Below are positions 11,924 to 58,800 of a DNA stretch of 64,000 nt, one piece after another. The stretch is from Macrostomum lignano (Eukaryota), in assembly GCA_002269645.1 (NCBI GenBank), contig NIVC01000020.1, forward strand, positions 806,001-870,000, given 5' to 3'. A program made the position numbers and the translations under genes. The notes under the pieces are model-generated. The model made no database searches. It was not told the DNA's origin and was given only the letters and a program-made list of their open reading frames with translations. Within the stretch, counting starts at the first letter, position 1, and every line of letters begins with the position of its first letter.

Positions 11924-12470
11924 ATCGGTCATAAAAACAGCCCGTAGCAATCGGTCATAAGCAGCCCATGAGAATCGGTCATAAACAGCCCATGAGAATC
12001 GGTCATAAACAGCCCGTGGGAATCGGTCATAAACAGTCCGTGGGAATCGGTCATAAACAGCCCGTGGAAATCGGTCATAAACAGCTTATTAGAATCGGTC
12101 ATAAACAGCCCGTGGGAATCGGTCATAAACAGTCCGTGGGAATCGGTCATAAACAGCCCGTGAAAATCGGTGATAAACAGCTTATTAGAATCGGTCATAA
12201 ACAGCCCATGAGAATCGGTCATAAACAGCCCGTGAGAATCGGTCATAAACAGCCCGTGGGAATCGGTCATAAACAGTCCGTGGGAATCGGTCATAAACAG
12301 CCCATGAGAATCGGTCATAAACAGCCCGTGGGAATCGGTCATAAACAGCCCATTAGAATCGGTCATGAACAGCCCGTGGCAGTCGGTCATAAGCAGTCGT
12401 GAGAATGTCATAAACCATTATGACATTAAAACCAGGTCATAAACAGCCCGTGGGAATCGTTCATAAACGA
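11924..12470. repeat. 24-bp minisatellite
   Basis: Unit ATCGGTCATAAACAGCCCGTGGGA. Confidence 0.92.
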
Positions 12471-13393
12471 CCGTGAGAAACTTGTCGGTGCCTCTGCTCC
12501 CTAATAAGCGCGGCTGTCATCGGAGCCTCAGCGGCTCATCTGCCAATTGATACTGCATTGCTGCAGCTCCTAATGCTGCTCACTCATCCCGCCTTGGCTG
12601 AAGGGATCTCAGTTGTCATCTTCGCACTTCTACGTAATTAGTGAATCTTCTGAGCCTCGGCCTTGCCCCGCCCCTCGCTGGGATCCCCGAGCCTCGCGGG
12701 CAAATCAATCAATAATTGGCAAAGGTTTGCAAGCAGAAACAGCTTCATCGTTAATGCAGCTTTATCATGCTATTAATTTTCAATTCACGTAACCGTGCGG
12801 GTTGCGATTCAGTCTTTGGGGGGAGAGGCGACTTTCTAACTGGCTGAGCATCCGGCATGCAGCATCCGCTCTTCATCAGTCACAGTATTTTCTCCCCTTC
12901 CGTTTGTCGGAAGCGTCTGTCGCTGCTGGCTCAACTGAAAAGCGTGAAGCCTCCAGCTTCCTGCATCTTCCCATCTCCATCGGAATTGGGATTATTTTTA
13001 ACTCAGTAGACTATTGAGTGCCTAGCAACGCGCCTTGTTTATTTTGGATACAACCAACCCCTCTATCTATCTGAAGAGCTGTTTTGCTAGTTGCACTGAT
13101 GCCCCAGCGGCCGGATTAAAGACAGGCGGGAGACGCTGAGTCTGAGGCCTGGCCAGTGGGGATTAGCCGGCACGATCCCCTCATTTGATTGATACATACT
13201 TGGTCCTGATGCGCTGCTGCCTACCCTCGCGCTAATCCCCGGTCTGTTTAATCAGCGGACGCCACGCTGATCCTCGGCAAGCAAAATAAACACTGGCAAG
13301 CCGCTTCAAAGCTTTTTTCTGCTGGTAGCCGGCTTCGGCGGCTTCAGGACCGAGACGGGCGGTAAAGTGCAAGGCGACCCACGCTACTCAGCA

Positions 13394-40834: not shown

Positions 40835-43800
40835 ATGAGAATTTCTGCGTGGGCGGTAAGTATATATCTCCTTTTTCAGCGCAGCAGCTCAATTATTATT
40901 AGGGAAATTAGTATACATTATTTTCTTTTATAAAGCAATCGGTTGTTAGACTTGCTGGGCGATTGACAGAACATGCAGGGATCGCAGTAGTGCAGTAGTG
41001 CCTTTTTTCCAATGCGAATGATTTGTCCACCTGTCAGGTGACTTGACCTTCACGCTTATTTAGGCAACCCTCTTTTACTTTTTTGTGGTGGATCCAGGGG
41101 TCAAAGGAGTTGCTGACCCTTTGTAGAAAACTAGGGATCAGTTAATTCTAAACCTGCCATTTTCTTGTTTAGTATAATTACATAAATCTACGAGTATATC
41201 GCATAGGCTAAATATTTGATAATCATCCTTAACATTATTAAAAAACGGTAGATCAAAATAGGTGAAGGCAAGCGGATTCCTAATCAAAATCTGTATCAAT
41301 AGCAATTGATACACCCTTGTTTACCGCATGGGGTGAATTGAAACGTGGATGGTCCATGGTCGATCCTGCAAATACACATGAGTCGTCCTTGGTATATTTA
41401 AAAAGTTGCATACTTTAGAATGTCTAAGAGCAGAATAAAAAAACTTTGTCTATATTTGGGTATAGAAATTCGCTTAAATTAACCAGTAGCTAAGCTAGCA
41501 TCGATAATTTGTAGTTAATGAATCAACGAGCAAAACCATAATATATATTTGGTACCCAGAATCATACACGTACGTAGAACGTGGCACCTAAATTAGAACG
41601 CAGTCATTTCCACTCATTTTTAGAGGCCCGTGCTGGCACGTTACTAAATTTAACTCTTTTGAAATAATTTGACTAAAATATCCAAACAAAATATTATTTG
41701 AAATTAAATAACCTCTATTGCTTTGTCAACATCTTTATAAATAGGCATTGTATTTTTTGCTTTACTATCTGCTAAAATTTAACTTGTGAGTGTTTTCAGA
41801 GTTTCGCAGAAAATGTCTGTTCAATTTCATTGGGACCAAGCGTTGTTGTATGCATAAGCAGTTTGACTTGATGCACTGGTAGGTGTTAGATATGTAGCAT
41901 GTATCTTAGAAACAAGGGAATGATGCTATGCAGGCTTATAATAGGGAGTGTCTACGTTAAAAAAGACTTTAGGCCTAGTCTCAGTCTCAGTTAATTTTTT
42001 AGTTTTGGCACTAGCCACTATCTATCTTGTCCTTGTTTGTAAAAAGAATGCACACTATTTCTAAAACTTACCTTTTTGGATATTTTCCAAACATTCAACA
42101 AATAATGCTTCTGGGTATTCTTATTGAGGTATGTAAATTTTGATGAGTGAATATTTTAAAGTATAAAAACATGAAAAATGCAACTAATACCATTATAAAA
42201 GGAACTAAGAATGTAAACAAAATAATTTTTTAATAATTTGTTTCAATATATGATGAAGTTTGGCTAATGTTTAGTTTGTACAATTTAATTCTAAAAGCAA
42301 ATACTTTTTTATGCTTTCATGAGTCTATTTTTGTTATAAGTCAACAAAGCTACTATTTTACATTAAAGTATTAATGTTAAATATCTTAAGTATCAAACAT
42401 TTGATCATACTTAAATCCTAGCCATGTTAATTTTTGTACCTTTTGTAATCACTTTTTAGTTAAAAAGGGGGCCTTATTTTAACTCATGTTGAAAATTGTC
42501 AAAAAATCAGCTAAAACTTTACAGCAAAATTCCATTTTAAATTTAATTATACATTTTATGTGACCTATTATATGCTAAATTATTCTGATTAGCATTTGTT
42601 ATATGCTATATTCATAACTGTATATATTTTTTGTTTATGTGTGCCAGAATTTTCTGCCATAATGTACACCTTCCTGAGTGTAAAATCCTAGGACTGATAT
42701 AAGTCATATGCAACCAAATTTTATGCCTTATCTTATTAAGTGTAGGTATGGCAATCTCCTAGTAAGTGTTGGTTTACTTTTTTTCAATTTAAGAAATGTT
42801 CTATTTATATACATAGTTTTGCATCCTTTGGCCAGATTAAATTCCTTTTTATTAGAGCTATATGCCTAATTCATACTCAGGATTATATCATTAATGCCAG
42901 AAATTTCTGGCACAAATTTGTAATAGCCAATGCATATTTTGGTGCATAATTTTTTTTGAAAATTCTTGTGGTATATATATATATATACTTGAATTTTAGT
43001 ATATAACATGCACTATATGGCACATATACACTTATTCTGAACCTAGAAGAGGCTGTGTTATGCCATTATAGTTTGTATAAGCATAAGAAATCAATTTAAA
43101 CCAGTGTCAAGATTGTGTATCAATTTGGAACAAAATTTGCTTCCCTAGCTCCTGTATACCAATCACCAATGTATGCCAATGGACTTAAACACACAAAAAT
43201 ACACCAAGACAAAAACAAAAAAGACAAACTATTTAAGGCTTGTGATTTTTTAATTTTTGCAAAAAAGATGAATAAAGAGTTGTTAATATTCTATTAAACT
43301 ATAAGGAACTAGTTTATTTTAAATATTTTTGTTCATACATACAAAACCTCCAAAATTCGGTTGGCCATGCAACTTAGTTGTGACAAAATGCGACAAAAAT
43401 GCGACATAGTTTTTGGCTAAAAATGTGACTTACATGTAAAAAAACCCTAGTGTAAGTAGCATAAAGCAAATTAACGCTACTTTGGGTAAATGGCAGCCAG
43501 GTTGCGGATGGTATGCATGTACGCCGGAACTTTTCCGGCGTACAAAACGGCCACCCTCAGTCCTTGGCATACACAATCGGCGTACACAACCCCTGGCGCA
43601 CTTTGTTGGCGTACACTATTGGCGTACACAAGTAACACAGCCACGCATACTTTTTTGGCGTACAAATTTTGGTGAATCAATTCATGCCGTGCATGAAAAT
43701 TGTAATGTAAATTAATGTTTTTACGTAAAGTAAAGGAAAATTTATATCGTCAGTGATAAACTTTTTGCTTATTTTAAGTTAAAAAAATAAAATTAGTGTA

Positions 43801-46800
43801 AAATTTTGCTGAAAGTATTAACTTTGCATGATATTTTTTGTAGGTGTTATTTAGTTTGTTTAAACTGACAATATTCGTAATATTTTAAAGACACTTTTCA
43901 TACGAAAGCCTTTCCTAGAAAACTCTACTCGTGAAAACCGAATGACCCTTTTTTTAGGAATTTTTGGTGTACATTTTAGTGCAACTTTTTGTTTTTGGCG
44001 TACACTGGCGTACAAAGTCCTTGACGCCCGAATTTTTTCCGGCGTACACGGGTACATGATCCGCACACTGGAATGGCAGGAGTAACTATGACTGTCTTAT
44101 TAAGTCAAAATGCCTCATCAGCTACTTAGTACTACTACCTGGGGTTTTTTAGGTGGGCATTTTTGCAACTTCCTTGTTTGGCCACCAAATCAGTTGGCTA
44201 GATTGGCCGACTCGGCCGACTGTTGCGCACGTATGTTTTTGTTATATTTTAACTTTTTAGAAAAGTTAAATATAATTTTTATTTAGTTTTTCAATAATTT
44301 TTAGGATGTATTCTTTTGAGTCAAAATTTAGCTATTTTCATTTTCCAATATACTAAAAATCAAAACTATCCTATATACTAAAACTAGTTGTCTATGTATG
44401 TAGCTATGCAATAGATTTAAGAAAAATGGCTTAACTGATTTTCTTCAAACTTGCACCATTCAATCAGGAATTTTCCTGTAATGGTACATGCATTGTGGCT
44501 AAGAAATTACTCAATGTTTAAGGGATTAAATATAAAAAAAAACATGCTTTTTGCAAAGGTCAAGTAGACTTTTCAACTTGAAATGCATTGTAAAAAAACT
44601 GACTGGCTGAATTTTGATTCTAATAAAAATTGCATCATAAAAAAGTTGAAAACAGTGTCAAAGAAAATCACACAAGACTTGATTAAAAAATTGCATAACC
44701 ATATTGCTAATTTAAATTGAAATTGAAATTGATGCTCACTGACTAAGAAGTTGATTTTGTCATAATTTTATTGAAATTGATGTTGACTGACTAAGAAATT
44801 GATTATGTCATACTTTTACTCTAACTGACACGATGTAAGAATTGAATTATAAGGGCCACCATTTTTCTCTAATTGACAAGAGATAGCCTAGATGCAAACA
44901 GACTAGACTGCTAATGTAGCAACCTGGGTTTGAATCTTAGTAGTGCAAAATATTTTTTATATGCAATATGTCAAACATAAAAATGGCACCATGTCAAACA
45001 TAAGAGCCACCATGTCAAACATAAAAGAGCCACCATGTCAAACATAAAAGAGGCACCATGTCAAACATAAAAGAGCCACCATGTCAAACATAAAAAAGGC
45101 ATCATGCCAAACATAAAAGAGCCATGTCAAATATAAAAGAGGCACCATGTCAAACATAAAGGAGCCACCATCTAAAACATATGAGAGCCACCATGTCAAA
45201 CAGAAAAGAGCCAGCCACCATGTCAAATATAAGGGAGCCACTATTTCAAACATAAAAGAGTCACCATATCAAACATAAACAAGGCACCATGTCAAACATA
45301 AAAGAGGCATCATGCCAAACATAAAAAAGCCACCATGTCAAACATAAAGGAGCCACCATGTCAAACAAAAAAGAGGCACCATATAGAACATAAAAGAAAA
45401 GAGAGCTTAGAAAGGGATTATTGTACTACCTGAAAAGGCAATTATTGCATTAGCTGAGGAAATTGTTGAACTAGCTATTTGCTGTCTGGTGGATTCTTGC
45501 TATTTAGGGATACTGGCTATCTGGGGAATGCTTAGCTGGGGGATGCTTGCTATCTAGGGGATGCTTGCTATCTGGGGGATGCTTGCTATCTGGGAGATGC
45601 TTGCTTTCTGGGAGATGCTTGCTTTCTGAGGGATGCTTGCTATTGGGGGATGCTTGCTCTTAGGGGGGGGGGGGAATCTGAGAAGGGTTTGCTAGCTATC
45701 TATGCATTCTTTCTATCCAGGGATGCTTGCTGTCTAGGAGATGCTTGCTATCTGGGGGTCACAGGGATGCTTTCTATTAGAAGGATGCTTGCTGTCTGGG
45801 AAATGCTTTTGACTTTGGGGGAATTCTTGCTATTTTTATTGTAAAGGCTAATTTTGTTGTGTACTTCTGTGACTTTTATAAAAAAGAGATTCATAGTAAA
45901 CATCTTTCATCCATGACAATTTAAGTCAAGTAAGGTGAAAACTGAAAAAGGAATCAGTTCTTTTAAAAGTGTGGTTTTTTAATGGTTTGCATGAATGATT
46001 TTTGCTCTTTGCATATTAGGCATCCCAAAGGGGGGCATTAGATTGCTAGTATTTAGCTAAACTTTAACTTAGTAATTTTTGTACAAAACTGTGTACATTG
46101 GTTTGACTTGCAACTTGGTCCTACCTGCCACCTTGGCAATCTCTATATACTAGACTATATACAAAAAAGGCATGCTAGGCTATTCTGTACGCCAATGGTG
46201 TACTCCAGGTCCTTCTGTATACTGGAATTTTCTGCTTACATATATACCATCTAGAGTCTGGTTTTTAAGTTATAAAAACTTTATTATTTAAAGACAAATT
46301 TATAAAAAAAATAATGTTGCATTAAGTTGTAAGTATATAGTTTGACAATTCTTTTGCAACTATATTATAGATACATAAAAGGATAATAGCTTTATTATGT
46401 AAATGTTTGTGTTTATTCTGGAGTAAGCCAAGGGCTAGGAGATATCAGATTTACCTTGGGTACAATGTGGCACACTAGTGGATTTTGCTTTGTGTACTTG
46501 GTGCACAATTGAAAATATTGTTGGGTAACTTCTGGCACATATGTAAGATGATCCTTACTATATTGCCTAACTGCCATCTCCTCTTCTATGGGCTTTGGTG
46601 ATAACAGCAAAGATAAAGGTCTAGAGTGGTTTTATGTTCACATACATGCGCAACCTCCAAAATTTGGTCGGCCGTGCGACTTAGTTTTAACAAAAATGCG
46701 ACGTAGTTTTCGGCCAAAAATGCGACTTACATGAAAAAAACCTGAAAGCAAAATTAACGCAACTTTGGGTAAACGGCAGGAGTAACTATAACTGTCTTTA

Positions 46801-49800
46801 TTAAGGCAAAATGCTTCGTCAGCTACTTAATACTACTTTGGTATTTATTTGGGTGGGCATTTTTGCAACTTACCTTGGTTGGCCGCCAAATCAGTCGTCC
46901 ATATCGGCCAACTATTGTGCATGTATGGTTTTGACTCTTGTCATTCCTAATCGTATTTGTACCCCATGTGGCACTAGAACAGTACACTTGACACGGAGTG
47001 TTTTAGGCATGATTGTACAGTGTAAGGTTGCAAAAGTGGGGAGTGGCAGAGATACATATGTATATATAGCTGTATGAGTATGATGGCACAAGCTAAGGCT
47101 AAGTCAATGCATGCAGCGATAAAAGCAGTCTGTAAAGCCAAATAGTGAAAGTTAACCTTAACTTATAGCACCTTGGCAGCCTATGCTGTCTGCCTGCATC
47201 TGATACGAGCATATAACTAAACTACCAAGGCAATTGGTTGTATTTACACTTACTTTCTGTACATGAATTGGTAAAGGTAAGGGCTTTTAAATGTTTTATT
47301 TATATAGTAATACTCATAAATCAATTTTATTTTATCACCAAAATCATATACTCGACTTAATCTTTCACAGAATGATGTACAGCCTTAGTTGTCTTTGCCT
47401 ACTGATTCTAAGTGGCATCCTAGCTATCAATGGTATTCTAGCTGAGAGTGAGTGCTCAATTGTTATAAATGAGTTAAATACTGATGAGCCTAATATTGGA
47501 TCTCAAGAATTTTCAGAGTTCATTGAGCTGAAGAAAGTTTGTTCCACAACTGCAATGCTATTAGGATCAGTGCCAGTGAGACTCCGTGATTTTCTTCTGA
47601 TTGGAGTTCAAGAATATAGCGGCGATTTTAGACGACCTGTGGTTTCATTTTCTGCTGACTTCTATCGGTCCTCGGGCTTCAAAACGGACAGCAGTTTCTT
47701 TGTTATTGCATCAAAAGAGAAGCAGGAAGCAGCAGATATGTTTTTTACCGATACATCTATTGGGTATCAGGGAAAAACTAGACATGGGCTGCCAAGTTCC
47801 GCTCCTTGTGGATCATCGCAGTCATCCATCATTGATTTTTTCAAGTCTGCTAGTAAGACAATTCCAACAGAACCAAATGCATTAAAGAATGGGAATGGTA
47901 AAAGTGCTATGGCCATTATTCTCTTGTATCAACGAGACTTTTCTAGATCAGAATCGGACAGTTCAAGTTCCACAACTGCCAGTAGCATTGGAAAACTGCG
48001 ACTAGCTAAAATGCATGCAACACAAAGAAGACCTGTTTATGAAGATAAAATTATCATTGATAACTCATTAGCTGAAATTATTAGGAACAATGTGCATGAC
48101 ATGATCATCTATGCACGAAGTACACAAAATAACAGGTGCACATTTTTTTAGTCCATTTATCGTAGGCTAAGAGACAAGCCCAACTACATCTTAAAGCCAG
48201 CAAGAGAATGGGATGAACTTGGTCATGAGGACTATTCAATAAACCGGTGCCCTGAATCCAGCAGTGAGTTACGAAAGCCTTTGCTTTTTACAAGGTGGAA
48301 ACTTGGACAGTTGACTCCAGGTAGAGAAAATGACTGCTCAGGTGCTCATTGGATTTTAGAGGACAATATTGAAGCCATCATAAATACACCTTCAAGAGAA
48401 GCAGGTACATTGGCAGACTCAGCATTAGCATCTGCTTCATCAGCAACAGAAAGAATCGAAATGCGACTAGCTCCTGCTCCAGCTCCATGTTCTGAAAGCT
48501 CACACCGTAGTGAATTGGCCAGGTCCTATGAATTTTCAGAGCAAATAGCAGCTAATCGAGATCATGCTGTTCAAACTGCTGCTGCAGAAACTTCTAATTT
48601 TTGCTCTGCTGCAAATGTACAGGAAAGAAGAGAGTTGTTGGAGAATGACCAGCAAACAAGCAAACTACAAGTAGAAATTATTAGGCAAGTAAATATTCAA
48701 AGACAATCAACGAAACGATCACTTTGCCAAAGTCCTATTGTTGATTTAGATTCGAGCGACTCAAGGGGTTCAGGTGATGTTGAAATAGTACAAGTAAATA
48801 CTGCAGAAGCAGGGCCATCGCAAAAAAAAATACCATGCATAAGCACATCTGCAGACGCATGTCTAGCCACTTCAGCATCAAAGCCCTCGTCTTCCTCTAT
48901 GATGGGCGAAAATATTGAAGTTTTCCCTAAAAAGGACTGGGAGGATACATCTGGTTTTCGAGAGGAGTGGTTACATTCTTTGGAGATGCACCAGTCACAG
49001 TAAGTAAATGGAAACTGACGAACTGTAAATTAATGTATAGTGTATTGTGCATTGCACTTATTAGCATATTGCTTTTAGATACTCACAAATAGTCCAAATC
49101 CCAAAATATTCTCTAATTTGACCATTGCAGATCATTTTCAAGAAAATTTGTGTCACAAGAAATGAAGACATGGTTTCAATATGTTCAAAACACCGAAGAT
49201 CTATCAAGATCTGGAATACAATGTCGGATCTGCAGAAAATTTTTGAATGCACATAAGAAAAAGGAGACAAATCTAGAGAGCCAACGTAAGTTAACTTTTG
49301 CAACAGAACAAGGCTACATTCCCAAAGGTCATGCAAAAGATAGCGTACGAAGAAAACTACAGGAACATTCATCAAATACACTTCAGTGACGCCATAAAGT
49401 GGATGAAGGAAAAACATACTTCAGTTCTTGCAAAGCAACTCAAACAGATGAATGAGGCCGCTAGACTAGCTAAAACTAAACGAGATGAAATAACAGCCCG
49501 AGTTTTGACAACAGTTTATGCCGAAGTCAAATCTAATATTCCATTCAGTGCTCATCCAAATATGATTGATTTACAAGTAAAAAATGGGTTGGATATGGGG
49601 AGCCATCATAAGCATCGCAAAAGTGCCGCAGCAATGGTGGAATCAATCAGTAATACAATGCATCGGACATTTGTGAATTACATTAAAAGTGCTGACAATC
49701 TTCCGATTTCTATTGTACTAGATACAACGTCTGATATTCATTCAAACAGCTACGTCATGATATACTTCAGAGTTCTTGAAAACAGCCAACATTTGATGTT

Positions 49801-52800
49801 TTTTATCGGTTTAAATGTCTGACTGAAGTAGAGACTGGACGAAGCATTTATGAACTTCTCATCCGTTTATTTTCGGATGACAAGCTAGAAGATGAAATCA
49901 AACGAAGGCTATTGGGGGTGACAACTGATGGTGCATCCGTAATGACAGGAAGTCGAGTGGGATTAATAAGTCAACTGAGGCCTTGGGCTAGCAAACAATT
50001 TTTTCAGCACCATTGTGCAGCGCATAAGTTAGAACTTTCAATCTATCATGCCTTTGAAATCTTCCCATTTATGCAACATCTCGATAAGAATATAAATTCT
50101 CTACACAAATTTTATATGAGCCACGCTGTTAAACGTAAGGCATCTTTGGCACAAACTTCGGAAGCACTCAACTTGGTTTTCTATGAATTAAAAAGAATAT
50201 ATCGCATCAGGTGGGTTGCATCGGAAGTGTCTGCTCTTGATGTGATTCGAAAGTCGTACTACTTGCTTCTGACAAATTTAGAAAATATCAAATCACCTTC
50301 CTCAGGCTTTGATGACGAAAGTAAAGCAACTGCCTCTGGATTATTGAAAACATTGCAAAATGTCCGGTATTATTCATTACATCTATTTCTCATGGACATT
50401 CTAAAATTACTGGAATTTGAGTCCTTGCAGTTTCAAAGAGCCAAGGGTACATTTATTGGCTTGCAAGAACGCCACACTAACCTTATCCATTCACTAGAAA
50501 CCTTAAAAACGAACAATGGTCCTCGCATTGTGGACTTTTTGGCTTCCTGCAAGTGTCGTCGAGTTTTGGGAACTGCAGATGGATATCCGCAGCTGGAATA
50601 CCATTCAGGATGTCACACAAGAGACCTATCTTATTCTAACTTTGCTTGTCCTTCCGGCCCTGGAAGCAGCGATCCAACAGAGAGGTTTGAGTTGAAGCAA
50701 CCAGGTTCTGCTGCAGACAGATCTCTAAGAAATAGATTATTTGATGCTAGTGGACGTGGCAGTGTTGTTGACATGGGAGCTTATCCAGCACTGGATGAGA
50801 TTCGCAGTCGAATCATTGATAGCATAATTGATCAGCTGCGTAATTATTTTCCTGAGGATGACTACTCAATATTTAATGTGCTCAACCCAGTGTTATTGCC
50901 TAATGCTGAAACATTACATACTGTCTTTACATACAGTTCGAGAATCATACCTCTTGCTAGACGGTTTGGAATGGAAGATGACAGCTCTGAATCTGAAACA
51001 GAGGACCATCTTTCTGATTCAGACTCTAGAGATGCAGATGCTTCAGAACGCGCTACAGAAAGGACAATCTCTGGTCAGACTACAGTTCTTCTAAGTTCAT
51101 ATATAAGACCGTTAGAATCTTGCAGTTTTAATTTGCTAATTAAATATTATTAAAAGTATGATTTGCAATTGTAATAGGGCTGAAAAATTACTGCTTATAA
51201 GTTATTCTATCCCTATTTCTATTCCTTAGCCATTTCTGGCTTCGTAATTCTTAATTTTTCAAATTGATGCGTTAATGCACACGTAGCCTACACCCTAGTA
51301 AGTGATACATTAAATTCATCCTAAACTAATCCTATCCTAATAATCCTAAAGATGCTCTGCGACTTAACTCAGTCCTGCTGCGACTTACCTCGGCCCTGCT
51401 GCGACTTACTCGGTCCTGCTGCGACTTAGCTCGCCCTCAGTGCGACTTAGCTCTCGCTCGGTGCGACTTAGCTCGCCCTCGGTGCGACTTAGCTCGCCCT
51501 CGGTGCGACTTAGCTCGGTCCTGCTGCGACTTAGTGCGACTTAGCTCTCGCTCGGTGCGACTTATTTTGCCCTCGGTGCGACTTAGCTCGCCCTTAGTGC
51601 GACTTAGCTCGGTCCTGCTGCGACATAGCTCGCCCTCAGTGCGACTTAGCTCTCGCTCGGTGCGACTTAGTTCGCCCTCGATGCGACTTAGCTCGGTCCT
51701 GCTGCGACTTAGCTCGCCCTCGGTGCGACTTAGCTCTCGCTCGGTGCGACTTAGCTCGCCCTCGGTGCGACTTAGCTCGGTCCTGCTGCGACTTAGTGCG
51801 ACTTAGCTCGGTCCTGCTGCGACTTAGTGCGACTTAGCTCTCGCTCGGTGCGACTTAGTTCGCCCTCGGTGCGACTTAGCTCGGTCCTGCTGCGACTTAG
51901 TGCGACTTAGCTCTCGCTCGGTGCGACTTATTTTGCCCTCGGTGCGACTTAGCTCGCCCTCGGTGCGACTTAGCTCGGTCCTGCTGCGACTTAGTGCGAC
52001 TTAGCTCGGTCCTGCTGCGACTTAGTGCGACTTAGCTCTCGCTCGGTGCGACTTAGTTCGCCCTCGGTGCGACTTAGCTCGGTCCTGCTGCGACTTAGTG
52101 CGACTTAGCTCTCGCTCGGTGCGACTTAGTTCGCCCTCGATGCGACTTAGCTCGGTCCTGCTGCGACTTAGCTCGCCCTCGGTGCGACTTAGCTCTCGCT
52201 CGGTGCGACTTAGCTCGCCCTCGGTGCGACTTAGCTCGGTCCTGCTGCGACTTAGTGCGACTTAGCTCGGTCCTGCTGCGACTTAGTGCGACTTAGCTCT
52301 CGCTCGGTGCGACTTAGTTCGCCCTCGGTGCGACTTAGCTCGGTCCTGCTGCGACTTAGCTCGCCCTCAGTGCGACAGCTCTCGCTCGGTGCGACTTAGT
52401 TCGCCCTCGGTGCAACTTAGCTCGGTCCTGCTGCAACTTAGCTCGCCCTCGGTGCGACTTAGCTTGGTCCTGCTGCGACTTAGTGCGACTTAGCTCTCGC
52501 TCGGTGCGACTTAGTTCGCCCTCGGTGCGACTTAGCTCGGTCCTGCTGCGACTTAGCTCGCCCTCAGTGCGACTTAGCTCTCGCTCGGTGCGACTTAGTT
52601 CGCCCTCGGTGCGACTTAGCTCGGTCCTGCTGCAACTTAGCTCGCCCTCGGTGCGACTTAGCTTGGTCCTGCTGCGACTTAGTGCGACTTAGCTCTCGCT
52701 CGGTGCGACTTAGTTCGCCCTCGGTGCGACTTAGCTCGGTCCTGCTGCGACTTAGCTCGCCCTCGGTGCGACTTAGCTCGGTCCTGCTGCGACTTAGTGC

Positions 52801-55800
52801 GACTTAGCTCTCGCTCGGTGCGACTTATTTTGCCCTCGGTGCGACTTAGCTCGCCCTCGGTGCGACTTAGCTCTCGCTCGGTGCGACTTAGTTCGCCCTC
52901 GATGCGACTTAGCTCGGTCCTGCTGCGACTTAGCTTGCCCTCGGTGCGACTTAGCTTGCCCTCGGTGCGACTTACCTTGTCTTCAGTGCTGCAACTTACA
53001 GCACTTACAACTCTTTTTGTGTTTTTCTCTTTCTCTTTGCTCCCTTTTTCTCATTTTTTCCTTTTCCTTTCCCCTTTTTCGTCTTTTGTTTTTTCGTTTT
53101 TTTTGGCGGTTAATCAATTTTGCGACTTACTTGGTTGGCCGCCAAATCGGTCGGCCGGATCGGCCGACTCGGCCGACTGTTGCGCATGTATGTATGTTCA
53201 GGTACTATTAGTGCAAGGGATTCAAACCTTCTTTTCTCATCTTATATAGATGGCTACAGATTGGGTAGGAATAGAGGTTATTTTAAGCAACAGATATGTG
53301 GGCCTATTATATGCATTTCATTCATGTTTTACATGAGTAAACTATGCCCATTTATGTGTATTTTGGGTAATTTTATGTGTATAAGCAAATGCACAAAATA
53401 GGTATCTTTGGTAACATAGAAAGTACACAATAATAATACAATATTGCAGATAGGTATAGGACCAAGGCTAACTATATATGTATATGCAAGTTCCTAAAAT
53501 TTGTTTATTTATACAAGTATACTTAATTGTTATAAGGCTTTTATTTTGACTAAGGCCAAAAATGGTGACTTAGCCAAGTTAAGGCTGAAGTGGGTTTTAA
53601 TAAATAAAGTTTAGAAAAAATCAAGACAAATTGATCAGTTTATGCATAAAAATGCAAATAATATTGCTGAGAATAGAATAAACTGATAGATAAATTGAGC
53701 AATTTATTAGAAAAAATAGTAACAAATAGTAACATTTAGTCTTAATTGTTAGATATAAAAAAACAAATAAATTGTTACTAATTTTAAGAGCCTGACGATG
53801 CCTGATGCAAGGCAAAACATGTCGCATAAAAAATGATAGCGCCACCTTCTTGATTCTACTTTTTCTCAGATGCGCAACTTTACCACAGTATTAGAAAAAA
53901 TAATTTAAGAATAAAAGGATAGTTACTAGTTAATTTTTTTATTACTAGTGTAATAAAAGAGCAACTTAATTTGATATCAAGCAATGAAAGTTCATGCACT
54001 GTATGGCTTAATTTATGTAGCTATAAACAATAGCATTCCAAAATAGATTTAGCTGAAAATCAAAATACATGGAAAATAATGGATAGTTGTGTCATCTAAA
54101 AGCTTATTGCATTGTTAGCTAGTTTTGTGCTAAATAGAACCAAGGATTTGTTCAATGGCCTGCTTGATGACTTTCTGCTAATTGTAGATAGAGTTAACCT
54201 TGGCTAAAATGTCAATACAAGTGCACTAGGATATAGGCCTTTATTGGTCAGCTGGATGACCATCTGAGAAGTCAATGACAATAGAGATTGCACTTTGGCC
54301 ATTGTTAGGGGCTTCAAATAGTTGTTGATATTGGGTTAGACATCTATCCAGTATGTTGGAAGTCAAGTATCAATTAACAGAGGCTGCACATTTGTAAAAT
54401 TAGTGCATACATGGCTTGTATAATTACTCTTGGCAGCATCTAAAGCCTCTTTGTTAGTGAGGACAGTCTAAATTTAAGTAGGTATAATTGTGGTATCTCA
54501 GCAGACTAACACAAGAAACACGAGTACGTGGCAGGTAAGACTTTTTTTCCGGAAAAAAAAGTACGAGCTCCACTTAGGGCAACCCGCGCTTATATTTGAT
54601 ATTTAACAGTAAATTGTTACACGATCGATAAATTCAACCACCAAAATGTCACGTGATTAAAAATATGTTTCACAATACAATATACAAATAATTTATTAAC
54701 TGCACTACTTAAAGTATAGTAGTAAGAAAAGGTTAGTTAGACGAACGGCCCTTTTACAAGCTCCTAGTCACGACACAACAATAATTATTAAGAATACTGG
54801 AATAAGGAACTATAGCTTAGTTAGACTTGCAATAGCAGAATAAGCTTACCGGTAGTATGTATGTTTTTTGTTCTCCATATGACATTACGTTCCAAATATG
54901 TGCATTTTATGCATGTGCATGTTGCTTGGATATAAAGGCAACAAATTACTGCAGGGTATACTGAATACTAGTGGTGCTATAATGTTTCCTCATAGTGAAT
55001 TTATGTAACTATATAATTAGCTGATAAAAACAATTGCCATTCAAATGTGCTGCGTTTTTTTCTTAGAAAAACTTCTCCTAAACAAAAACTAAATCTTCTT
55101 ATCAATAAAACTTGAACCACCTTAGCAAAGCTAACTAATATTATCTGAAATATTTGTTTCAACTAAACTGTGAAATCATATGTATATCTACTTTCTGCCA
55201 TTTGACAAAAAAACAAATGACTGTTTAACAAAAAGGCTTTTAATTAAAAGGTTTTTGATGAAATGTCAATCTACTTTTAGACTAAACAGCCATATGCAGC
55301 CTTCAGATGCACTATGCAATAGCTGTGGCTGAGCTGTTGGTTGAATATGTGGCCAAATTGTGGCAAGTGTAATCCATTATTTTTATTTTTATTATCTTCT
55401 ACTTCTAAATAGAAGTATGCAAAAATTATCTTTTGCAATGTTATACTTAGTCAAATAGGTTTTCTAAGTATATTACAAATAAATTTTCTAAAAAACACCC
55501 AAAAGCAAGTGTTGAAAAAATTAATTTTAAAGAATATCTTATAATAATAATAATTGTTTTTGATTTTGATTGCTTCATTAGTCCAAAGCAATGTTTAGGG
55601 CCTAGTGTTAAATATCTTAGCAATGAAGTCAACTTTTGCAGTGCTTGAGGTATTATTTTAAAGCTAAAATGTATAAAAAATTAATAAAGCAATTTTGAAA
55701 CAAGTTTATCTTATCAAGCTAATACTATGATAAAAAATCAATGGTAGGTCAAGATGATATGTAATTATAGTGTTGCTAAGAAATCTTTGAATTGATTTAT

Positions 55801-58800
55801 CTTATATTTAACTTTAATTAAAAATGTAAGTTTTTATAATTTGATACCAAACAATTATTTAAATGTTTGTTTAAAAGAAAGTTAAACTAGGTTAGGCCTA
55901 GTTTTATTAACAAAAGTATAAATAACTTTTGAATATGACCTATTTGAATATGAATATCTCTTGGGAAAACTACACATGACTTATTTTTAGGTTAAATTTT
56001 AGTTCTATTGAAAGAGTTCCTTTTAACAGTAGTTTAGTGTCTATAAATATCAAAAAGTAAAATTATTATTAGCTTCAAAGTCATTCCATAGAATCATACT
56101 TTTGAAATAATTCATAAAATTTCTTAACATATAAATGGTACATTTCACTTTCAAGACCTTTTCTACATTGTATATAACTTCAAGATTAAAATACATATAA
56201 TCTATTTTAAATCATTAATTTCTCAATTTAATGATAAAAAACTTTATTTAAACTGTTTAAAGTTTTATCTTATATGTAGCTAAGAAATTGTTTTAATCTT
56301 TAAAAACAAAATCTGAGTTTTCTAAGAGATAAATTGTCAGAATGGAAAAACTGTACATTGAATTCACAATTGAAGATTTATTCCATAAAAGTCATTTAAC
56401 TATTGGCTATTGGCTATTAGCTATTGGTAGAAAAAATATTATTAAAATTTGTGCCTAGCATATTTTGGCAACAAGAAATCTTTATTTTGAGTGATTATAA
56501 CTTCTATGTAATCCTATAGAAATAAAACCTAATGAATTTAGTAGAAGATATTTTTGTTGTTATTTCATTTAAAGTTTCGAGGGAAAGGTTAAAAGTAATG
56601 TTTAGTAATAGACAAAGTTTGAGTAATTTTTTGAGTAGATTTTGAATAAGTTTTTGAGCTAAGCTTACAATACAAAAAGTAGAAAAAAATTAGTCATTAA
56701 TACTATTGCAATTGTAGTCAACTATAAGTCTCTAGCATATTAAATGCAGATATTGTTTAGGCAAAATCAGAATTTTGCATATTCATAATTGCTAGCATTA
56801 AAACAATAAAATAAATAAGTTTCAGGATAAAAAAGAACCAAAAAGCAGAGGGAACATCTTTATGCTTTGCATTTTGAATTTATATATGCATATTATTGAT
56901 GCATAATTGAAAAAAGACAATTTGACATTCTTCATTAAATTTAGTTAATATTTAGAGATTTAGTATAGGTGGATTTTTTTACTAAAGTTAATCACTTATT
57001 TTGTAAAATTTACTTTTGTATAAAAAATAAGCTAAACTTTGTTAAACCAAGTTAGATTTTGTTAGATCAAAGGCAAATCAATTCAGTCTAGTCAGCATAA
57101 GTGAGGCAAGGTAGATGTGAAGCATATGTACACTATAAGGCCACTCCCAAACCATCACTTGGTTGTCAGTTAAGCTCTCTTATTGATGCAAGCAATTACC
57201 AAATTGTCTTCATCAAAGCATCTCTCATAGAAGTTGTCCTATTTGTTATTAATTCACATACTAATGATGGTCTTGGGTAGAAGAATGTGGCATTTATATA
57301 GTCACCCAGTCTACCCACCAATAACTAGATAGTCACCCAGTCTACCCACCAATGACTAGATAGTCACCCAGTCTACCCACCAATGACTAGATAGTCACCC
57401 AGTCTACCCACCAATGACTAGATAGTCACCCAGTCTACCCACCAATGACTAGATAGTCACTCAGTCTATCCATTTCCCTCCGCTCCCGCTGGCCCCGCAG
57501 TTCGCCTTGTCGGTTTTGTCGGCCACCTCGCCGGCACCCAGCGCCAAGCCGGTCGAATCGGTGACGCTCCAACAGTTCGCCAACGCGAGCCAAGCCTCCC
57601 TGAGCCTGGGCTGTCGTCTCCCTGGCAACAGCTCCGACCGCGTCACCTACGTAGAGTGGCAGGTGCACGGCGACACCGTCTGCCGGCTGTTTCTGCAGCG
57701 CAAGCCGATGGAATTGGACGAATGCCGAAGCAGTCTGCACAGCCTGGGCATCGGCATTAACGACGCGGGGGTGCAGCTGGTGCTGGCGCCGGTGCTTGCC
57801 CGTCATGAGGGCCGCTACCGCTGCCTGGCGTACGAGGATTCGGACTCGTACGAGCTCGTGACCAATGTGCTAGTGCGCGGTGAGCAGCGGGAACTGGGAT
57901 TTCATGTCACGTGACCAATGTGCTAGTGCGCGGTGAGCAGCGGGAACTGGGATTTCATGTCACGTGACCAATGTGCTAGTGCGCGGTGAGCAGCGGGAAC
58001 TGGGATTTCATGTCACGTGACCAATGTGCTAGTGCGCGGTGAGCAGCGGGAACTGGGTTTTCATGTCACGTGACCAATGTGCTAGTGCGCGGTGAGCAGC
58101 GGGAACTGGGTTTTCATGTCACGTGACCAATGTGCTAGTGCGCGGTGAGCAGCGGGAACTGGGGTTTCATGTCACGTGACCAATGTGCTAGTGCGCGGTG
58201 AGCAGCGGGAACTGGGTTTTCATGTCACGTGACCAATGTGCTAGTGCGCGGTGAGCAGCGGGAACTGGGGTTTCATGTCACGTGACCAATGTGCTAGTGC
58301 GCGGTGAGCAGCGGGAACTGGGGTTTCATGTCACGTGACCAATGTGCTAGTGCGCGGTGAGCAGCGGGAACTGGGTTTTCATGTCACGTGACCAATGTGC
58401 TAGTGCGCGGTGAGCAGCGGGAACTGGGTTTTCATGTCACGTGACCAATGTGCTAGTGCGCGGTGAGCAGCGGGAACTGGGGTTTCATGTCAAAGCGTGT
58501 ATCGTGACACATCAGCTTTAATTTTAGCATCCTAAATTCGGATCCCAAAGTTGGCACCATGTTTTTGCCACACTGGATGGCGTCATGTTTTATTTGAATT
58601 ATCAATAATGTCATAATTCTTAGTATTTGAAGACTCACGAGTTGTAAAACTCGAATAATCTGTAAACATGGAGTCTGCAAGTCTGCTGGAGTTCGAGTCT
58701 TTCGGACTACGAATAAAATAATATGATACCTGTCTCAGTTGTCAGGACGTTTGGCAACAGAAAATCATTTATACACAACTGTTCTACCCGCTGCGCATGG

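Follow-up and report, generated by a model that had tools for sequence, protein, structure and literature searches.

Transposases are expected to be nuclear and to start with a DNA-binding domain. Why, then, does a hAT transposon begin its gene with what looks like a secretory signal, followed by a module resembling the lamin tail domain (LTD) of extracellular proteins? The question is raised by an element at positions 46641-53192 of a 64,000-nucleotide stretch of the Macrostomum lignano genome (assembly GCA_002269645.1, contig NIVC01000020.1, forward-strand positions 806,001 to 870,000), hereafter the window, for which a sequence-only reading of the DNA and its open reading frames (ORFs) had proposed this architecture. 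We find that the window holds a recently inserted, now dead, copy of an autonomous M. lignano hAT transposon; that signal, LTD and transposase belong together family-wide and are kept so by selection; and that, judged by profile comparison, the module is a true LTD homologue although it scores below the Pfam threshold. The identity and architecture of the element are far more certain than either of the mechanisms weighed below for its N-terminus, routing to the endoplasmic reticulum (ER) or an LTD at work in the nucleus.

Layout of the element and its gene

The perfect terminal inverted repeats (TIRs) and 8-bp target-site duplication (TSD) that the sequence-only reading had placed around 46641-53192 were both verified, as TIR CATACATGCGCAAC and TSD TATGTTCA. 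The reading frame, the motifs and the phase-2 intron at 49000-49130 also stood as claimed, on the evidence of translation, collinearity with the intron-less relative P0003 and a matching intron at locus L004. The features of the element, in window coordinates, are as follows.

46633-46640, unstranded: left TSD TATGTTCA, an 8-mer identical to 53193-53200
46641-46654, plus strand: left TIR CATACATGCGCAAC, 14 bp, perfect reverse complement of 53179-53192
46675-46726, plus strand: left subterminal 22-bp repeats with TGCGAC(T/G)TA (Tandem Repeats Finder, TRF, period 22, 2.3 copies)
46858-46927, plus strand: internal right-end copy whose TIR is degenerate, 86% identity to 53115-53169
47372-47443, plus strand: exon 1, signal-peptide-like N-terminus MMYSLSCLCLLILSGILAINGILA (from translation; best 9-mer Kyte-Doolittle value 3.08)
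47444-48406, plus strand: exon 1, LTD-derived module, amino acids 25-345, interrupted by a TAG
48149-48151, plus strand: the in-frame TAG, a nonsense mutation; the codon is GAA (Glu) in L004 (P0001) and also encodes Glu in L001
48407-48931, plus strand: exon 1, Ser/Ala-rich linker with Cys motifs APCSESS and NFCSAAN and a weak basic patch, SQKKIP
48932-48999, plus strand: end of exon 1, conserved junction motif KDWEDTSGFREEWLHSLEMHQSQ, 77% identity to L004
49000-49130, plus strand: phase-2 intron, GTAAGT...TTGCAG, 131 nt, read from the sequence and at the same position and phase in L004
49131-49420, plus strand: start of exon 2, CxxC...H..S..H zinc-finger segment (Cys 49222 and 49231)
49421-51078, plus strand: hAT RNase-H-like core and insertion domain, 98% identity to M. 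lignano P0007
51077-51078, plus strand: breakpoint of a 506-bp deletion, from alignment to L001; P0007 goes on FGLLLKS...SSAEAKRGFS
51357-52989, plus strand: satellite of ~75 units of 21 bp (GTGCGACTTAGCTCGCCCTCG), ~1.6 kb
53106-53192, minus strand: right subterminal region and right TIR (53179-53192)
53193-53200, unstranded: right TSD TATGTTCA

From the ATG at 47372 the frame reads MMYSLSCLCLLILSGILAINGILA-ESECSIVINELN...EFIELK...HDMIIYARS...NRCTFF-stop...SINRCP...TPGRENDCSG and then enters the linker. Splicing out 49000-49130 gives ...HSLEMHQSQ/SFSRKFVSQEMKTWFQY...IQCRICRKF, and over the 52 residues from the Trp of WEDT to the first finger Cys the spliced product is collinear, and gap-free, with the intron-less ORF of P0003. 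The junction pattern WE.T..F...W is conserved family-wide. Downstream lie the catalytic motifs LDTTSD (Asp at 49721), TTDGAS (Asp at 49927), HCAAH (50011-50025, with Cys at 50014-50016 and His at 50023-50025) and RW (50209-50214). An intact two-exon single gene would encode ~1,340 amino acids, in the order of a ~24-residue cleavable-looking signal, a ~320-residue LTD derivative with two insertions, a Cys-containing linker, the WE.T..F..W junction, a CxxC...H..H zinc finger, an ordinary hAT core and a C-terminal dimerisation domain.

The 5' end of the gene shows two further features. Directly ahead of the signal start codon is a sequence like a 3' splice acceptor (ttcacag followed by A, 47360-47374; ttttgcag in L004, 195-234), which could be that of a 5'-untranslated-region intron or a site of spliced-leader trans-splicing. 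An in-frame upstream ATG at 47291 would be bypassed if this acceptor-like site were used.

The transposase half is a hAT transposase

Several lines of evidence place the catalytic half in the hAT superfamily. First, three insertions carry the 8-bp TSDs of hAT elements (TATGTTCA for the window copy, CTTGGGTT for L001 and TTTTTGTT for a non-autonomous relative described below), and the TIRs are short, 14 bp and perfect. Second, a 26-sequence family profile matched the Hermes transposase (E 4e-8, Hermes residues 546-601). Third, the AlphaFold 2 (AF2) model of P0007 was confident, with a predicted local distance difference test score (pLDDT) of 84 and a predicted template-modelling score (pTM) of 0.81, and the top 12 matches of this model in a Foldseek search of the PDB were all Hermes (E 5.7e-11 to 8.8e-9; template-modelling score, normalised to the target, 0.50-0.64), with no non-Hermes match below E 0.1. 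Finally, the columns of the D, D, C..H and RW motifs are invariant across the family. The sequence-only reading had described the core as hAT/ZNF862-like, and fold, motifs and PF27073-bearing relatives agree with that description.

The two halves of the window product, read as they stand with their breaks, gave no Pfam match; the PF05699 region is deleted in this copy. Precomputed matches to PF27073 (FAM200-ZBED5 RNase-like) exist for P0007 and P0008, and to PF05699 also for P0007; PF27073 was returned by none of our local Pfam scans. The hAT C-terminal dimerisation domain, PF05699, is absent from the window copy because the region is deleted at 51077, and it is found in the family members P0041, P0061 and P0095 (E 5e-5 to 2e-6); the window copy is thus a defective hAT member, not a non-member. 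Similarly, the catalytic-Glu motif (A/V)ER(G/A)FS is deleted in the window copy, present in relatives and changed to Lys in L001/P0007.

The named sequence relatives of the transposase are ZNF862-like, KIAA1586-like and C17orf113-like proteins, distant ones that carry precomputed PF27073 matches, and these relatives place the family in the Buster-like, or ZBED5-FAM200-ZNF862-like, branch of hAT. With the Hermes element and the Buster-like group (including the domesticated ZBED5, FAM200, ZNF862, KIAA1586 and C17orf113) the family shares 8-bp TSDs, short TIRs, an RNase-H-like core with an all-alpha insertion domain and the D, D, C..H and RW motifs, as well as the C-terminal dimerisation domain with (S)AE.ER.FS, at the level of the family, and a zinc finger ahead of the core. 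It differs in having ~520 extra N-terminal residues before the zinc finger, which none of the named sequence relatives shows, and the window copy itself differs in having no C-terminal domain. The element TIR begins CATAC, not the CAG/TAG common in hAT TIRs. The Buster TSD consensus is nnnTAnnn; it was not seen in the three TSDs at hand, and three are too few for a test of the consensus.

The N-terminal module is homologous to LTDs

Is the module an LTD at all? Its likeness to INE...EFIEL...TPG..N could be fortuitous, and direct searches would allow that reading. A Pfam scan of the window module returned no family at E<=1, and searches of PDB sequences, whether the query was the single module sequence or its profile, gave chance-level matches only, such as ferritin and a bromodomain. 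An AF2 model of the module was confident (pLDDT 83, pTM 0.85) and mostly beta-stranded, and Foldseek of this model against the PDB found nothing at E<=1e-3, with only weak matches to immunoglobulin (Ig), antibody and nanobody structures. The two insertions probably mask the LTD core in that comparison. Among 44 module sequences from the family, six matched Pfam LTD, with a best E of 0.0026 that is under the gathering score, and LTD was the sole Pfam family to recur.

Profile methods gave a different outcome. A hidden Markov model (HMM) of the module, built from eight sequences and run against 1.84 billion representatives, found 518 cluster representatives at E<=1e-3 and 97 at E<=1e-30. Among them were multi-repeat LTD proteins, P0025 at E 1.8e-66 and P0050 at E 3.5e-50, which score E 7.5e-95 and 4.3e-62, respectively, against Pfam LTD itself; the proteins retrieved are amphioxus C3ZWX4 / LOC118427361, named 'LTD domain-containing protein', and homologues from Ptychodera flava and Branchiostoma lanceolatum. 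In profile-profile comparison with hhalign, the module profile matched a single LTD unit with a probability of 97.4%, and an alignment of the 44 modules (A3) matched 16 repeat units (A4), 15 of which pass Pfam LTD, at 99.78% and E 3.7e-28, over columns 8-239 against 1-182. In this alignment the module is one LTD unit enlarged by two insertions. Modules and LTD units share an (I/V)INE(L/V)N start, E(F/Y)IEL, an LVD.VVY strand and an S.NRC...PTPG..N.C tail, whose two cysteines are invariant.

The LTD-like module of the sequence-only reading is therefore borne out by a full-length match to LTD units, verified with Pfam, from surface proteins of amphioxus and an acorn worm, and of the checks that reading had proposed, the profile comparison succeeded and the direct Pfam and Foldseek fold matches failed. 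Against a profile-profile match of this extent and HMMER matches to the LTD-repeat proteins of this strength, we reject chance resemblance, to which we give next to no credence.

Module and transposase form one gene across a large family

Multiple comparisons support the junction of module and transposase in one reading frame. First, P0003, from a Joint Genome Institute (JGI) metagenome (44% identity), has one unbroken ORF that covers a signal-like N-terminus, the module, the linker and the zinc finger. Second, L004 (64% identity) has its intron at the same place and phase as the window copy. Third, in L005 (27% identity) a phase-2 intron 13 codons upstream joins module to finger in frame, and the finger is followed by a PF27073 core and hAT C-terminus. 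Given these three, we regard the predicted splice 48999/49131 as solid even before any RNA is considered. Eleven of the retrieved relatives are single ORFs of 1011-1249 amino acids with the whole architecture; a hAT C-terminal match was found in all four fusion proteins scanned (P0041, P0061, P0092 and P0095; E 4e-4 to 2e-6); and, by local HMMs, the transposase follows the module in 46 of the 50 proteins that have at least 200 amino acids after it, at identities down to ~25%. The single frame claimed by the sequence-only reading is thus found both in P0003 and in nearly all relatives that are long enough to show it.

A TAA stop lies in frame directly at the intron donor, GTAAGT. Donor-adjacent in-frame stops (TAA or TGA) are found in the window (48999-49006), in L005 (1611-1618) and in L004 (1795-1803), and the exon-1 ORFs of many relatives stop exactly at the conserved ...KYF(Q/K/R/E) junction. 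The locus might accordingly be read as two independent genes never spliced together, one for a secreted LTD protein that ends at the donor TAA and one for a transposase starting at the Met of ...QEMKTWFQY; exon 2 does have an ATG at its start, from which the annotated M. lignano protein P0008 begins, and the junction is a prediction from sequence comparison. However, the predicted splice uses canonical sites, keeps the frame and gives a product in exact register with intron-less P0003; L004 shares the position and phase of the intron; a different intron in L005 joins the parts in frame; dozens of fused ORFs are uninterrupted; and fused ORFs do not keep the initial Met of exon 2 (examples are P0024, P0041, P0061 and P0086). 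Two separate genes are highly improbable, and we reject that reading.

The module is also under selection. Between the window copy and L004, dN/dS (the ratio of nonsynonymous to synonymous substitution rates) was 0.16 for the LTD part, 0.49 for the linker and 0.63 for the signal region, rough values since dS is saturated at ~1.6 between the two. L004 served for this comparison because in L002, which represents a second M. lignano subfamily, only the final portion of the module survives. The sequence-only reading had singled out dN/dS<1 on the LTD part as informative, and the ~0.16 found here lies below that value.

A further alternative, that a host exon was taken up as passive cargo by this element alone or within its M. 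lignano lineage, accords with two facts: hAT elements can transduplicate host fragments, and M. lignano annotation currently covers the transposase half only. A one-off chimaera does not, however, account for a module present in 518 cluster representatives, fused to the transposase in 46 of 50 testable relatives at identities as low as ~25%, held under purifying selection and represented by its C-terminal end in the L002 subfamily as well. We reject it as vanishingly improbable. Cargo captured by this particular element, as the sequence-only reading had called the module, is consequently the wrong description; throughout a large family the module is built into the transposase, as an old component kept by selection.

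Three observations concern particular relatives or the linker. The ORFs of P0022 and P0130 contain one complete LTD module preceded by the terminal portion of another (...SPTPGAPNSCNE...), and some elements may carry two tandem LTD units. P0076 is an intact, intron-less relative of 1086 amino acids (L007 10001-13261; ENA ERZ25067825, a 73.7-kb contig) that sits among BTB- and F-box-type genes in DNA of 34% GC; no TIR and 8-bp TSD were found around it within 4 kb on either side, and either it has been domesticated or it belongs to an element whose ends went unrecognised. In the linker (48482-48616), Cys motifs like QC[ST]SS (APCSESS) and D.C[ST].L (NFCSAAN) recur in distant members, as does a basic cluster ahead of the WE.T..F junction; the linker may be a small extra domain, or a processing site or nuclear localisation signal (NLS).

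What the N-terminus might do

We assessed the signal peptide by heuristics, a Kyte-Doolittle 9-mer value of at least 2.0 just before the LTD and the geometry of the presequence. The window presequence is 24 amino acids, MMYSLSCLCLLILSGILAINGILA followed by ESEC, and of 101 relatives that start with Met, 81 have a strongly hydrophobic 9-mer immediately ahead of the LTD. Among 69 non-redundant N-termini the median presequence is 27 residues; the uncharged hydrophobic core has a median of 15 (interquartile range 12-17) and reaches 19 or more in only 9; the LTD starts ~6 residues later; and Lys or Arg precedes the core in 41. The signal sequence has diverged to 25% identity with its hydrophobic character retained. 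By these measures the geometry fits a cleavable secretory signal rather than a membrane anchor, and the signal-peptide-like character ascribed to the N-terminus by the sequence-only reading extends to most of the family.

The full explanation that we favour, with moderate confidence, combines a dead copy of an autonomous hAT element, a captured LTD front end and partial routing to the ER. An ancestral element would have captured the 5' exon of a host gene for an LTD-repeat surface protein. The catalytic half would move the element by standard hAT cut-and-paste, making 8-bp TSDs, and would probably recognise the TGCGACTTA subterminal repeats. Through the N-terminus, some or all of what the gene produces would enter the ER and secretory pathway. 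Translation of unspliced mRNA would stop at the donor TAA and yield a secreted 543-residue protein of signal, LTD and linker; spliced mRNA would yield the full-length protein, which could have a dual fate, with inefficient ER entry set against nuclear import via the basic cluster ahead of the junction.

Several observations weigh against this explanation, besides the failed Pfam and Foldseek matches of the module and the predicted status of the splice noted above. ER entry is inferred from sequence heuristics, and ~20% of relatives have no hydrophobic N-terminus, although at least one such exception, P0006, is a truncated gene call whose ORF extends upstream to MKCIILLTIFLSVYVFKVKS followed by DC. 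A scan of the family found no stop-transfer or transmembrane segment between LTD and transposase. Full translocation would therefore leave the zinc finger and core in the lumen, away from DNA and in an oxidising compartment, and a wholly secreted transposase is hard to reconcile with function. A basic cluster (RKRK, RRKRK or KRK) lies 10-20 residues ahead of the junction in many members; some relatives lack it, and the window copy has only a weak one, SQKKIP. Such a cluster could be an NLS or, equally, a furin-type cleavage site. Finally, exon capture is a scenario suggested by shared layout rather than by a phylogeny.

Some of these observations are better accommodated if the same architecture has an N-terminus that is no working secretion signal, so that the protein stays on the cytoplasmic or nuclear side. 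The LTD would then be an accessory module for binding DNA, chromatin or lamina or for oligomerisation, and the N-terminus would be buried or act as a weak tether to the ER or nuclear envelope. A transposase must reach nuclear DNA, and no stop-transfer segment is present; many members have an NLS-like basic cluster ahead of the junction; zinc finger and core are of the usual nuclear hAT type; and lamin tails are nuclear domains of Ig fold. The role of an LTD is also not fixed, since that of the Vibrio cholerae nuclease Xds is dispensable for activity and localisation (PMC6746945). The family's N-termini argue otherwise, with short cores (median 15 residues) and a signal geometry kept despite divergence to 25% identity. 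Moreover, the closest cellular relatives of the module that we found are extracellular repeat units placed directly after a signal peptide, and the Cys pair common to those extracellular units is invariant in the modules. We regard a purely cytoplasmic or nuclear protein as possible, though doubtful.

Partial ER routing, the reading we prefer, has a bolder form, in which the transposase of a large, old transposon family truly enters the secretory pathway through its conserved signal and extracellular-type LTD. We consider this unlikely. To our knowledge, a secretory route has been described for no cut-and-paste transposase. If it were true, the protein or an LTD-only isoform could leave the cell that produces it, with soma-to-germline delivery of transposase, or control of transposition from outside the nucleus, as possible consequences.

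In either case, purifying selection has preserved a secretion-type signal and a surface-type LTD in front of a standard transposase in hundreds of divergent hAT elements. If the signal works, the life cycle of these DNA transposons includes an unknown step, for which targeting to the ER or nuclear envelope, dual localisation and export of a regulatory isoform are candidates. If it does not, an extracellular domain has been re-used inside the nucleus, which bears on LTD function. M. lignano is a flatworm in which transgenesis works (PMC5730564), and these questions would be directly testable there.

Likeness to known systems and possible origin

The animal LTD-repeat proteins offer a model for the source of the front end. 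P0025 of amphioxus (Branchiostoma floridae) is a type I membrane protein in which a signal is followed directly by an LTD unit with (I/V)INE(L/V)N..P...E(F/Y)IEL, and the P. flava and B. lanceolatum homologues have hydrophobic N-termini before the first LTD unit. These proteins share with the transposon module the LVD.VVY strand and the ...S(L/I)(S/N)RC...PTPG..N.C tail with the same two Cys residues. This correspondence between the start of P0025, a signal and then immediately an LTD unit with the same Cys pair, and the start of the transposon gene suggests exon capture. Unlike the transposon product, the animal proteins have at least eight tandem units of ~180 amino acids and no transposase, and P0025 also has a C-terminal transmembrane segment; the transposon module is a single unit, grown to 250-320 amino acids by two insertions, with extra conserved Cys residues.

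Xds, a nuclease of ExeM/NucH type, has the same order of parts, with signal peptide, N-terminal LTD, linkers and then a DNA-processing enzyme (PMC6746945). Its catalytic domain is unrelated (an EEP nuclease with an OB fold), and the protein is bacterial and truly extracytoplasmic. Xds/ExeM is a formal analogue, and we claim homology for the LTD only.

The single intron recalls a different system. In the Drosophila P element, retention of the third intron leads to a truncated, non-catalytic product. Here too one gene would give either a full transposase or a truncated N-terminal product through a single intron (49000-49130). The P element belongs to another superfamily, however, the truncated product here would be a signal-LTD protein rather than a DNA-binding repressor, and the splicing alternative is predicted.

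We found no description of an LTD or signal peptide on hAT transposases in the full-text literature searched, a scope that excludes Repbase and Dfam. None of 17 fusion proteins looked up had an informative name, 'hypothetical protein' being the most that was given, and a protein search with the 44-sequence profile returned no named protein. The statement of the sequence-only reading that this architecture is foreign to described hAT families therefore holds for the literature and names searched. The family is a hAT member with a front-end architecture not named in any source that we searched, and it gives annotators of repeats and genes a recognisable new hAT architecture.

Decay of the window copy and its sister

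L001, the locus of P0007 (BOX15_Mlig001790g1), is a sister copy of the window element with the same ends and a different TSD, CTTGGGTT, and the two are 99.5% identical in aligned bases. In the transposase part, the window copy is 98% identical to P0007 and 70% identical to P0008, a second M. lignano paralogue. Alignment to L001 revealed frameshifts in the zinc finger (2 bp deleted at 49384) and in the catalytic core (1 bp deleted at 49799), and the 506-bp deletion, which took the whole hAT C-terminal dimerisation domain and the catalytic-Glu motif. The sequence-only reading had seen the TAG and had missed the two frameshifts and this deletion. With a nonsense codon, two frameshifts and a C-terminal deletion the window copy encodes nothing functional, and the idea that this copy could encode an exported or ER-targeted product has to be given up.

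L001 keeps the zinc-finger segment intact (RKLQEHSSNTLHSDAIKWMKEKH) and has lesions of its own: 39 bp are deleted, the module contains a stop codon, 2 bp are inserted and AEAKRGFS has Lys in place of Glu. Around this last site (P0007 residues about 560-570) L001 has SSAEAKRGFS against a family consensus of ..AERGFS. The annotated protein P0007, on this comparison, would be catalytically dead even in an open frame. Sister copies of 99.5% identity with different TSDs and different lesions indicate that the family was recently active, and that both copies examined are wrecks.

Terminal repeats, satellite and neighbourhood

Within the left subterminal repeats the TGCGAC(T/G)TA motif matches at 46676, 46698 and 46722. 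The satellite units and these 22-bp repeats share the core motif TGCGACTTA, and the satellite units may be amplified, putative transposase-binding sites. The array is ~0.7 kb in L001 (about 12280-13000) and ~1.6 kb in the window copy; because the sister copies are otherwise 99.5% identical, the length of the satellite must change quickly. Allowing two mismatches at most, a search of the window gave 4 matches to the TIR pattern where 0.43 are expected, and a TIR-like CATACATGCACAAT lies on the minus strand at 46914-46927, within the internal copy of the right end.

At its left edge the element has 287 bp (46641-46927) that resemble a complete mini-element composed of the left end and the internal copy of the right subterminal region. 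The large element is thus laid out as mini-element, gene and right end, a layout common to the sister copy L001. A non-autonomous relative of 902 bp, similar to a miniature inverted-repeat transposable element (MITE), occupies 43334-44235 of the window. It begins CATACATACAAAAC..., ends ...GTTGCGCACGTATG, is flanked by its own 8-bp TSD TTTTTGTT and is 75-86% identical to the terminal regions of the element. Element and MITE lie within an AT-rich stretch at 42000-58000 (GC 30-38% outside the element), which is flanked by GC-rich stretches (50-60%) that hold most of the other long ORFs of the window.

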